Shown here in pieces: positions 63,269 through 64,000 of a DNA stretch of 64,000 nucleotides. Made by a program: the position numbers and the translations under genes. The stretch's first letter is position 1. Each line of letters starts with the position of its first letter. Origin of the DNA: Magallana gigas (taxonomy: Eukaryota); NCBI RefSeq assembly GCF_963853765.1, contig NC_088862.1, positions 21,762,001-21,826,000 of the forward strand, given 5' to 3'. The notes under the pieces were generated by a model. It saw nothing but the letters and a program-made list of their open reading frames with translations, was not told the origin of the DNA and searched no databases.

Positions 63269-64000
63269 ATGTCTGACAATTGCCGTGTGTCTGAGGCCCT
63301 GTACGTGGGTCTGTGTCGTTATATAGGGACACCGACAGAGGTGACCGTCAGGAGGGAGGCGATGGACATGGCGGAGATGATAACGAAACATATACTGATA
63401 GATGGTGGTGTGAGAATAATGACAAGTGGTAGTCATAGGGAAGGTTTTAGATTTCAATCTTCTGACAGGGACACGATGTACTGGTCTACCGATAATAAAG
63501 TAATTACTGACCTATCACAGTCCAGTGCTTATGATCTGTCAAAACATTCAATTATTCTCATGGAGGACACTGATACACCACCGGGGTTTGTCAGACTACA
63601 ACTTCTGACGTCACCACGAGATGGAATCATTGAATCGTCAGTTGTTCCATATAATGACGGCATGTACATATCATGTATGAGGTGGAGACAAAGAATGTTA
63701 ACTATAATTAGTGGAGACAAAACCTCTAAAAATGCAAAAACCCATGGTCCTTGTGCAAACGCTCTCGTTGCTAATATAGAAACTGACTATGCTCTTTGTA
63801 TTCATTGTTCCTACTGGTCACGATTAACCTGTTATTGGAGAAAAAGATGCATTCTGCATAACTGGCCTCAAAACCACGTGTTTGATGATATTCTTAGGAA
63901 TGGCTGTCATTTTGTGCCTGTCGGACATAAAATAGCGGGCGATGAAAATGAACTTGATTGGAGATTATCGTTTTCTCAGGCAGAACAAAAACTAGTGTAT
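63269..64000 (+). CDS. Second cGAS-like receptor (cGLR), 5' part; 244 open codons running off the window (not in the ORF track)
   Basis: MSDNCRVSEALYVGLCRYIG...TSGSHREGFRFQSSDRDTMYW...IETDYALC...WRLSFSQAEQKLVY; no stop; GS, DxD and third Asp retained. Confidence 0.9.
   Translation, partial: MSDNCRVSEALYVGLCRYIGTPTEVTVRREAMDMAEMITKHILIDGGVRIMTSGSHREGFRFQSSDRDTMYWSTDNKVITDLSQSSAYDLSKHSIILMEDTDTPPGFVRLQLLTSPRDGIIESSVVPYNDGMYISCMRWRQRMLTIISGDKTSKNAKTHGPCANALVANIETDYALCIHCSYWSRLTCYWRKRCILHNWPQNHVFDDILRNGCHFVPVGHKIAGDENELDWRLSFSQAEQKLVY

Follow-up and report, generated by a model that had tools for sequence, protein, structure and literature searches.

A radiation of cGAS-like receptors (cGLRs) in bivalves and the fusion of cGLRs to TPR domains are already published: more than 200 cGLRs were reported in Crassostrea virginica and Dreissena polymorpha, with TPR fusions among those listed (Li et al. 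2023, PMC9980059). Two oyster receptors, Cv-cGLR1 (PDB 8gjw) and Cg-cGLR1, are activated by dsDNA and make 2′3′-cUA. Bivalves carry hundreds of cGLRs, and most animal cGLRs are orphans, with no ligand known to activate them. The ligand platform of cGAS is on the side opposite to the active site, and both the spine helix and the activation loop take part in it (PMC5084157; bioRxiv 10.1101/2023.09.03.556085).

The window, that is, the whole stretch of 64,000 nucleotides analysed here (Magallana gigas, contig NC_088862.1, positions 21,762,001 to 21,826,000 of the forward strand), carries a tandemly repeated cassette composed of a death-like-domain gene and a cGLR gene. The two cGLR genes, cGLR1 and cGLR2, are intact and 83% identical. 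The features of the locus, in positions of the window, are the following:

26551..27171, + strand: last exon of a death-like-domain gene (coding 26564-26866, then 3′ UTR), a separate gene upstream of cGLR1
31218..33308, + strand: cGLR1, an intronless ORF of 696 aa; residues 1-345 are the cGAS/Mab-21 nucleotidyltransferase fold and residues 346-696 the TPR-like helical-repeat tail
31332..31445, + strand: hypervariable block 1 of cGLR1 (residues 39-76; spine helix end, beta-1, GS loop, beta-2), with the invariant sites G54-S55 (31377-31382), D66 (31413-31415) and D68 (31419-31421)
31644..31727, + strand: hypervariable blocks 2 and 3 of cGLR1 (residues 143-153 and 165-170); the codon of the catalytic D173 comes next (31734-31736)
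39129..45225, + strand: three C-terminal (TPR-tail) cGLR fragments (39129-40339, 41602-42210 and 44617-45225), pseudogene pieces
60047..60357, + strand: duplicate of the death-like exon, upstream of cGLR2
63269..64000, + strand: cGLR2, codons 1-244 inside the window; the gene extends past the window end and its product has 696 aa
63383..63496, + strand: hypervariable block 1 of cGLR2 (residues 39-76), with the invariant sites G54-S55 (63428-63433), D66 (63464-63466) and D68 (63470-63472)
63695..63778, + strand: hypervariable blocks 2 and 3 of cGLR2; D173 codon at 63785-63787

Neither a stop nor a frameshift was found in cGLR2 past the window, where the frame (L004:1501-3588) is open for 699 aa and holds zero stops in the matched residues 1-301. 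The three tail fragments sit between the two cassette copies, inside a local repeat with units of ~1-3 kb. In tblastn searches with cGLR1 they showed 53-77% identity to residues 287-694 only, and fragment 39129-40339 shifts frame.

Both genes are of the cGAS-fold (cGLR) type with intact catalytic motifs, as a preliminary description had proposed, according to their Pfam, profile and Foldseek matches. In detail, cGLR1 matches Mab-21 (6e-10, 39.9 bits) and Mab-21_C (4e-12, 46.5 bits) and cGLR2 the same two families with 35.6 and 48.4 bits (cut-off 24.1). The AlphaFold2 model of cGLR1 (pLDDT 93, pTM 0.90) consists, in the relevant regions, of helix 22-45, strands 48-53 and 67-73, and helix 136-149 followed by a loop and strands 162-167 and 170-180. 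Block 39-76 therefore spans the spine helix end, beta-1, the GS loop and beta-2, exactly as described before. The best Foldseek match of this model was mouse cGAS with DNA (4o6a) and the second Cv-cGLR1 (8gjw, target TM 0.70), which has the same catalytic motifs; the top matches, human cGAS among them, had E ~1e-12 and target TM 0.70-0.74. Sequence and profile matches to cGAS and cGLR1 chains reached 5e-11 and 5e-29, respectively, the best profile match being 8gjy (“cGAS-like receptor 1,” E=5e-29). Compared with cGLR1, the 8gjw and 8gjy chains (346-376 residues) have 18% identity and comprise the cGAS-fold part only, with no tail like residues 346-696.

The G54-S55 motif is present in both copies, in 20/20 close paralogs and in at least 90% of 60 family sequences. 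D66-x-D68 and D173 are at least 90% conserved in the family, and in the profile alignment D173 is placed on the Asp of the cGAS I-S-V-D-I-T motif. The WRLSFS..E and SY.VKT motifs of cGAS also have aligned segments here; family-wide, W231, S234, F235 and K280 are invariant and R232, E239, S276, Y277 and T281 are at least 90% conserved. The two copies are alike in these segments except for K240Q, at the end of the first.

Similarly to the receptors of Li et al. (PMC9980059), the genes have a cGAS fold, a G-S motif, an acidic triad, a TPR-type tail and more than 100 copies per genome. They differ in the spacing from the second to the third acid: D68 and D173 are 104 residues apart, outside the X50-90 of the published pattern [E/D]h[E/D] X50-90 [E/D] (PMC9980059). 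The enzymatic activity of the TPR-fused clade is best termed putative. The pI of its enzyme domains ranges from 6.1 to 8.9, with 15/20 under ~8.5, the value linked to nucleic-acid sensors by Li et al. (PMC9980059).

With vertebrate cGAS, the clade shares the overall fold (TM 0.70-0.74 for mouse and human), the order spine helix, beta-1, GS loop, beta-2, and the WRLSFS..E and SY.VKT segments. Unlike vertebrate cGAS, it has an extra TPR-like domain, is intronless and, on a cursory look, has no evident insertion of the Zn-thumb type. TPR_1/TPR_2 score 18-21 bits in both copies, under the Pfam cut-offs of 27-28. The tail model (residues 346-696, pLDDT 92) is made almost entirely of helical hairpins, with two short strand pairs. 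Its Foldseek matches were weak and generic, all of them TPR proteins (E 0.006-0.09, query TM up to 0.41), and no specific structural relative of the tail was found among them.

cGLR1 is transcribed independently. In four studies, RNA-type contigs span the gene from 31159 on with 0-1 differences and include its unique block 1, in which the RNA contigs carry just two variants, I52T and H73D (places 31372 and 31434).

The death-like exons upstream of the two cGLRs are nearly identical (97% in DNA, 98% in protein), as had been noted. They were indeed duplicated alongside the cGLRs, but the exon is part of a separate upstream gene. RNA-type contigs of this gene have lengths of 753-2080 nt; their ends fall at 27132-27171, and they reveal a GT..AG intron between 26432 and 26551. 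A fusion of the exon to cGLR was rejected: the upstream gene ends at ~27171, there is no RNA coverage at ~29.6-31.0 kb, and no RNA-type contig joins the exon to the cGLR. The matches of the exons to Pfam Death (E 0.033 and 14.8 bits upstream of cGLR1, E 0.01 and 16.4 bits upstream of cGLR2, with a cut-off of 22.6) span profile positions 9-83 of 86.

The two copies were aligned ungapped and codon by codon (31218-31949 against 63269-64000). The amino acid differences number 2/38 in residues 1-38, 19/38 in 39-76, 6/66 in 77-142, 9/11 in 143-153, 0/11 in 154-164, 5/6 in 165-170 and 8/74 in 171-244 (total 49/244). G54-S55, D66, D68 and D173 are identical, and the counts given earlier were exact. 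In cGLR1, blocks 2 and 3 are parted by the conserved segment K-T-H-G-P-C-A-N. The differences are clustered (9 in the densest 12-residue window, where permutations averaged 6.0, P=0.006). Within the three blocks there are 33 replacement and 2 purely synonymous codons, against 16 and 7 in the rest of residues 1-244 (Fisher P=0.022).

The pair had been described as recent. With a whole-gene dS of 0.134 and flanking non-coding DNA that is 85-94% identical, the copies are not very recent. Trees do not place them as sisters, and they are not clearly each other's nearest relatives.

The pattern had also been presented as a feature of one pair, but the same positions vary family-wide. The genome holds at least 132 matches to the family, ~113 of them with open frames of at least 600 aa; each member is intronless, of ~690 aa, with a Mab-21/cGAS-fold enzyme and a TPR-like tail. 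The positions of the focal blocks also vary in 20 close paralogs, each with its own block sequences, and in 58 distant relatives. In the latter, the positions that differ between cGLR1 and cGLR2 are more variable than those elsewhere (entropy 3.25 versus 2.38, P=6e-7). The blockwise differences of the two genes are the family's standing hypervariable regions.

The variable residues form periodic stripes. One stripe follows a single face of the spine helix through its C-terminal half (residues 32, 35, 39, 42/43 and 46). Others occupy alternate residues of beta-1 (48, 50, 52), beta-2 (67, 69, 71, 73) and the D173 strand (170, 172, 174), and they alternate with the conserved R49/M51/S53, D66/D68/M70/W72 and E171/D173. 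Judged by this periodicity and by the secondary structure of the model, the stripe residues would point away from the catalytic face. Their surface exposure and spatial contiguity are suggested by the periodicity. Positions 32, 42, 44, 48, 67, 71, 73, 146, 147 and 174 mostly carry hydrophobic residues, which may lie in the interior and not at the surface. Further variable spots are found in loops 117-120 and 145-158 of the enzyme domain and in patches of the TPR tail (~397-412, 552-582, 628-632 and 661-671). The catalytic triad, the GS loop and the segments aligned with nucleotide-contacting motifs of cGAS are conserved.

In the literature searched, no description was found of periodic hypervariable stripes with a selection signal in cGLRs. 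In comparison with the Toll-like receptors of bivalves (PMC10279657), the tandem arrays, the many paralogs and the variable recognition regions on a conserved scaffold are alike. The fold and the signalling chemistry are different, and the variable sites of the cGLRs are on or behind the catalytic sheet instead of in a repeat ectodomain.

Rates of substitution were obtained from pairwise counts and from likelihoods summing over internal states. Between cGLR1 and cGLR2, dN is 0.355 and dS 0.146 within the blocks (ratio 2.4; P=0.08 against neutrality), and dN is 0.041 and dS 0.080 in the remainder of residues 1-244 (ratio 0.5); the ratio in residues 245-696 is likewise 0.5. A codon-likelihood mixture including classes with nonsynonymous above synonymous rates improved the fit by a 2dlnL of 98 over the whole gene; by part, the gain was about 38.4-38.6 in residues 1-244, 63.5 in the TPR tail and 5.1 in residues 245-345. 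Nowhere in the gene is constraint stronger than in the latter, the helical lobe (ratio 0.23).

The hypervariable blocks could also be tolerant positions that drift near-neutrally while the rest of the gene is under purifying selection, with no adaptive meaning. Several results agree with such a relaxation. Across the family, dN/dS of whole blocks amounts to 0.8-1.7, with no significant excess over 1, and just 6 sites of residues 1-244 pass the per-site likelihood-ratio test at P<0.05. Likewise, sites chosen by their variability in distant relatives have a ratio of 0.9-1.7 (P=0.08-0.66), in an alignment that slips by one residue at ~47-49. Against it, the mixture gain for residues 1-244 compares with a maximum of 10.0 in 25 null simulations, and the fitted classes have ratios from ~1.3 to well above 3. 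When sites variable in one clade were examined in independent pairs of the other, the ratio was 1.6-1.7 (P=0.013 overall, P=0.05 for the enzyme domain and P=0.036 for the tail); the ratio of the focal pair points the same way. Moreover, strict stripes (i/i+2 and i/i+3/i+4) fall on elements that bear or abut catalytic residues, beyond the loops. Relaxed constraint by itself seems to us rather unlikely. Were it true, the locus would be no more than a usual tandem array in an immune gene family whose expansion is already known.

The blocks might alternatively have been pasted from more distant cGLR paralogs by patchy gene conversion, so that their divergence would reflect foreign ancestry and not selection. 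Exchange among paralogs is evident: the PHI test on 11 chromosome-10 paralogs detected recombination or gene conversion (P<0.001), in third codon positions too. Among the 30 closest paralogs the nearest one switches from segment to segment, and the placement of cGLR1 and cGLR2 apart in trees fits the same picture. Such recombination can inflate tree-based selection tests; with partition-specific trees the mixture signal was 39.0 and 34.6. The synonymous rate in the blocks appears 1.3-2.2x higher family-wide, which also favours imported tracts, but over eight independent pairs the excess of purely synonymous differences is 1.3-1.5x and not significant (P=0.06-0.10). This small excess, together with the presence of just two RNA-contig variants in block 1, also led to the rejection of a local mutation hot spot.

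The search for donors weighs against imported tracts as well. In the 564-Mb assembly no donor was found for block 39-76 of cGLR2 (best full-length match 82-83%) or of cGLR1 (best match to another paralog 88%). For blocks 143-170, searched among the 30 closest paralogs only, the best match was 83-86%; the framework segments reach 94-98% at best with these paralogs. In addition, the codons of the blocks with unchanged amino acids in the focal pair have 2/19 synonymous differences, where a distant donor would bring many, and every paralog has block sequences of its own. We give conversion as the source of the blocks very little weight. The preliminary description had left the choice between diversifying selection and patchy conversion undecided; selection is favoured over imported tracts because block dS is close to the gene-wide dS and because no donor for block 39-76 was found in the assembly. 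Rates at the variable sites are neutral or higher, and the evidence for positive selection is moderate and not decisive.

The blocks had been said to include strands lining the NTP pocket, and the copies had been suggested to have different ligands or cyclic dinucleotide products. According to the second of these options, changes on the catalytic strands would alter nucleotide choice or linkage. The variable residues do occupy the three strands with D66/D68 and D173, as well as the surroundings of the GS loop. Residue 218, which adjoins the V-P of the conserved F-V-P, differs between the copies (I versus V), at what we take to be the position of a substrate-contacting Lys in cGAS (human numbering). 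The unusual 2′3′-cUA made by oyster cGLRs is a further point in its favour (PMC9980059). On the contrary, the variable side chains alternate with the catalytic acids and with R49/M51/S53/M70/W72, which would direct them to the opposite side of the sheet, away from the pocket; a location of this kind was among the outcomes that the preliminary description had named as refuting its proposal. The pocket-motif segments are conserved family-wide and, K240Q excepted, shared by both copies, and the helical lobe shows no signal of positive selection. Remodelling of the pocket is accordingly judged highly doubtful, and changed products between cGLR1 and cGLR2 are unlikely.

The explanation that we consider fairly probable is diversifying selection on a surface used for sensing or regulation, which would yield sensors with different triggers and probably the same type of nucleotide signal. 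cGLR1 and cGLR2 come from a lineage-specific, very large radiation of cGAS-like receptors with a fused TPR-like tail. Recurrent selection may have acted on the switch region of cGAS type, the part through which ligand binding in cGAS is linked to the active site, and on the TPR tail, with gene conversion keeping the framework alike among paralogs. The variable stripes of the clade fall in the region that forms the DNA-binding platform and switch of cGAS, a correspondence of region and not of residues. The outcome could be a large set of sensors that differ in their triggers or in the antagonists that they evade. If the stripes mark such a surface, the radiation diversifies inputs with outputs unchanged, and the stripes give a short list of residues for paralog swaps that would locate the determinants of ligand specificity.

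A more specific and tentative version, to which we assign a low likelihood, is that the stripes behind the catalytic sheet and the patches of the tail come together in a single composite site or pocket for recognition. Every one of the 100-plus paralogs would in that case be activated by its own ligand, possibly other than a nucleic acid (a pathogen protein, a peptide or a small molecule). The family would be a repertoire of specific sensors, encoded in the germline, that all feed one nucleotide-signal pathway, with the recognition code written in ~30-40 positions. The near-neutral pI of most enzyme domains and the mixture of hydrophobic and polar variable sites are compatible with a site of this kind.

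As a minor observation, the antisense frame across codons 1-81 is open in 12/20 paralogs (P ~0.01-0.03 given amino acid composition). As a cause of the skewed rates this frame was set aside: its product would be as variable as the blocks, and the synonymous rate of block 1 is not depressed.

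Both genes of the focal pair, cGLR1 and its paralog cGLR2, encode full-length proteins.

31218-33308, forward strand: cGLR1, a single open frame of 696 aa
63269 to beyond the end of the window, forward strand: cGLR2 (locus L004), an intact frame of 696 aa, 83% identical to cGLR1

The preliminary description had allowed for a stop or frameshift in the remainder of cGLR2; the frame runs through intact. The Pfam domains Mab-21 and Mab-21_C are above threshold in both proteins, and the TPR signal of their tails (residues 346-696) is sub-threshold. Searches against solved structures matched cGAS and oyster-type cGLR1 chains (5e-11 by sequence and 5e-29 by profile). 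The best structural matches of a full-length AlphaFold2 model (pLDDT 93, pTM 0.90) are mouse cGAS with DNA and Cv-cGLR1 (target TM 0.70-0.74). The tail, modelled separately (pLDDT 92), consists of helical hairpins almost throughout, with weak and generic TPR matches. In the profile alignment, D173 falls on the catalytic Asp of the cGAS strand I-S-V-D-I-T, and the motifs W-R-L-S-F-S-x-x-E and S-Y-x-V-K-T align to the corresponding cGAS motifs, which in human cGAS carry the nucleotide-contacting residues R376, S378, S380, E383, and Y436. By the published criteria, cGLR1 and cGLR2 are cGLRs in their cGAS-like fold and G[S/G] motif; the acidic triad is present too, but its spacing (104 residues) departs from the stated 50-90. 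A further paralog (L019, on the chromosome-scale contig C10 near 22,420,600) has Asn in place of the second catalytic Asp at residue 68 (S-S-D-L-N) and is otherwise intact; with this replacement, the protein may be inactive or act as a decoy.

The six-frame search of the 564-Mb assembly with the first 301 residues gave at least 132 scored matches, among 404 candidates, and about 113 of the scored matches sit in open frames of at least 600 aa according to our table. Among 1.8 billion protein representatives, 361 clusters were found at E<1e-30, many of which share an architecture of ~680 aa. Li et al. 2023 (PMC9980059) reported that some bivalve genomes encode over 200 cGLRs and that cGLRs occur fused to TPR modules; the radiation and the TPR fusion are already known. 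What is described here is a real and well-described pattern within a known kind of gene family and no new kind of system. In the literature searched, no description was found of periodic hypervariable stripes on the spine helix and the noncatalytic side of the sheet, of matching patches in the tail, or of a repeated cassette of a death-like gene and a cGLR.

The ungapped, codon-by-codon alignment of 31218-31949 with 63269-64000 reproduced exactly the per-block counts of the preliminary description. The two proteins differ at 2 positions in residues 1-38, at 19 of 38 in 39-76, at 6 in 77-142, at 9 of 11 in 143-153, at none in 154-164, at 5 of 6 in 165-170, and at 8 in 171-244, and the catalytic and GS residues G54-S55, D66, D68, and D173 are identical in both, as had been stated. 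The differences are clustered nonrandomly (P=0.006). Codons with replacements outnumber purely synonymous ones by 33 to 2 in the three blocks (39-76, 143-153, and 165-170), against 16 to 7 elsewhere in residues 1-244 (Fisher P=0.022). When full-length cGLR2 is used, more clusters appear in the tail, at residues 392-420, 547-563, and 571-582.

These blocks are hypervariable throughout the family. In 58 distant relatives, the most variable positions are those that distinguish cGLR1 from cGLR2 (P=6e-7). The per-column table of 20 aligned close paralogs shows a near-invariant framework (R28-R29, D33-M34, M37-I38, R49, M51, S53-G54-S55, R57-E58-G59, S64-S65-D66, D68, M70, W72, H-G-P-C at 159-162, and D173), broken by positions taking 6-12 different residues. 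The sites of strongest signal on the model helix 22-45 are 32, 35, 39, 42/43, and 46, a 3-4-3-4 spacing which in the model marks one face of the helix, the conserved D33, M34, M37, I38, and P41 marking the other. On the strands they are 48, 50, and 52 (strand 48-53), 67, 69, 71, and 73 (strand 67-73), and 170, 172, and 174 (strand 170-180), and on each strand they alternate with catalytic or conserved residues, so that in the model the variable side chains are predicted to face the side of the sheet opposite the catalytic carboxylates. The earlier placement of the differences in the spine helix, the GS loop, and the catalytic strands thus stands for the elements, but the side chains are predicted to point away from the catalytic face. 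Of the variable positions, 35, 39, 43, 46, 50, 52, 119, 120, 150, 168, and 169 are clearly polar, and 32, 42, 44, 48, 67, 71, 73, 146, 147, and 174 are mostly hydrophobic; together they may form one exposed patch, a sheet-helix pocket, or partly a variable core.

In cGAS, the spine helix contributes to a ligand platform on the side opposite the active site, and together with the activation loop it relays DNA binding (PMC5084157). The main DNA contacts are residues of the spine helix and the activation loop and the beta2-beta3 loop, according to a molecular-dynamics preprint (10.1101/2023.09.03.556085). The variable stripes of the cGLR clade fall in equivalent elements, with an uncertain residue-by-residue correspondence, and the pattern serves as a map of candidate specificity positions.

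In 12 of the 20 paralogs, an antisense frame in codon register with the cGLR (31206-31445, reverse strand, in cGLR1) runs without a stop opposite sense codons 1-81 (79-130 aa). Within this stretch the sense strand uses none of TTA, CTA, and TCA, although these three account for 6-7% of the codons of the whole gene (P about 0.01-0.03 with the amino acid composition taken into account). The antisense product would vary as much as the first block, and the frame is probably a chance feature shared by descent.

Regarding the origin of the blocks, patchy conversion from other cGLRs had been proposed beside diversifying selection. In the focal pair, dN and dS are 0.355 and 0.146 in the blocks, 0.041 and 0.080 in the rest of residues 1-244, and 0.079 and 0.157 in residues 245-696; synonymous divergence in the blocks is thus close to that of the whole gene (0.134). 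Nowhere in the assembly does a match to block 39-76 exceed 83% (cGLR2) or 88% (cGLR1), and among the 30 closest paralogs the best match is 83-86% for blocks 143-170 against 94-98% for framework segments. Counted at unchanged residues in eight independent pairs, purely synonymous differences amount to 14.6% within the blocks and 10-11% outside them (P=0.06-0.10). With such low block identity and only a slight synonymous excess, a tract imported from a distant donor is not supported. A PHI test detects recombination among the paralogs (P<0.001, also when restricted to third codon positions), which fits conversion homogenising the framework.

The codon-likelihood grid, summed over internal states, gave a gene-wide omega of 0.59. 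Allowing classes with nonsynonymous above synonymous rates improved the fit by 98 over all sites, 38.6 in residues 1-244, 5.1 in 245-345, and 63.5 in the tail; with partition-specific trees the gain was 39.0 and 34.6, and the maximum in 25 null simulations of residues 1-244 was 10.0. In a tree-free cross-validation, in which sites variable in one clade were scored in independent pairs of the other, the ratios were 1.6-1.7 (P=0.013 overall). The main rival is that these sites are purely under relaxed constraint. Counting for it and against positive selection, family-wide ratios for entire blocks come to only 0.8-1.7, sites picked from distant relatives give 0.9-1.7 (P=0.08-0.66), and the focal pair tested against neutrality gives P=0.08; relaxation alone, however, accords poorly with the likelihood gains, far above the nulls, and with the cross-clade ratios. 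These codon comparisons suggest that the variable sites change no more slowly than neutral sites and probably faster, and true diversifying selection is somewhat favoured.

Different cyclic dinucleotide products had also been suggested for the two copies. No part of the gene is under stronger constraint than the helical lobe (245-345; ratio 0.23), and the two copies share the cGAS-type pocket motifs except for K240Q at the end of the first motif, which argues against changed products. The pI of the enzyme domains (residues 1-345) ranges from 6.1 to 8.9, and because 15 of the 20 lie below about 8.5, the value tied to nucleic-acid sensors by Li et al. (PMC9980059), the ligand of the cGLR-TPR clade could possibly be other than a nucleic acid.

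The window covers positions 21,762,001-21,826,000 of C10. Each gene of the pair is part of a repeated unit of roughly 20 kb or more, whose matching segments are about 15974-36652 and 49611 to the end of the window; 32,051 bp separate the two ORF starts. Outside the coding sequence the copies are 85-94% identical (93% over the 242 nt that precede the start codons), and together with the gene-wide dS this shows that the duplication is not very recent, contrary to the earlier reading. In the trees, cGLR1 joins a paralog 246 kb away and cGLR2 joins other neighbours. Each unit also holds a second gene.

23994-27171 and 57411-60357: window copies of a multi-exon gene with a terminal death-like exon
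C10 at 21,788,564; 21,822,058; 21,850,869; and 21,900,134: the four genome copies of this gene

All four copies of the exon, whose Pfam Death match is below threshold, are on C10, 2-4.6 kb upstream of cGLR1, cGLR2, one truncated cGLR, and another intact cGLR. The near-identity reported for the co-duplicated death-domain exons holds (96-99% in protein), but RNA-type contigs from four studies show it as the final, spliced exon of a separate gene, whose end lies near 27171. In the adjoining cGLRs, 16-22% of the first 301 residues differ. The death-like gene and the cGLR appear to duplicate as a cassette, with diversification only in the cGLR.

The same contigs show no coverage at about 29.6-31.0 kb, between the death-like gene and cGLR1; they cover cGLR1 from 31159 on, including its unique first block, which lies within contigs that differ from the genome at 0-1 positions. 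Therefore, cGLR1 is expressed as its own unit. Among contig variants, T>C at 31372 occurs in two studies and C>G at 31434 in one; by our reading they encode I52T and H73D, each at a position of cGLR1 that is hypervariable. Another contig, with five differences at 31925-31959, carries residues of cGLR2-like paralogs and reflects either cross-mapping or an allelic conversion tract.

Other features of the window are listed below.

39129-40339, 41602-42210, and 44617-45225: three C-terminal (TPR-tail) cGLR fragments, protein identity 53-77%
21845-22444, reverse strand: ORF of 199 aa with a clear BED zinc finger (Pfam E=3e-13), inside the duplicated unit
8504-9685, forward strand: ORF of 393 aa, whose only match is TMEM126-like, faint, and sub-threshold (E=0.006)

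The fragments, the first of which changes frame, lie inside a local repeat (40864-46486) and resemble pseudogene remnants that have multiplied as tandem units of ~1-3 kb in the stretch separating the cassette copies. The BED zinc finger ORF is probably transposase-derived.
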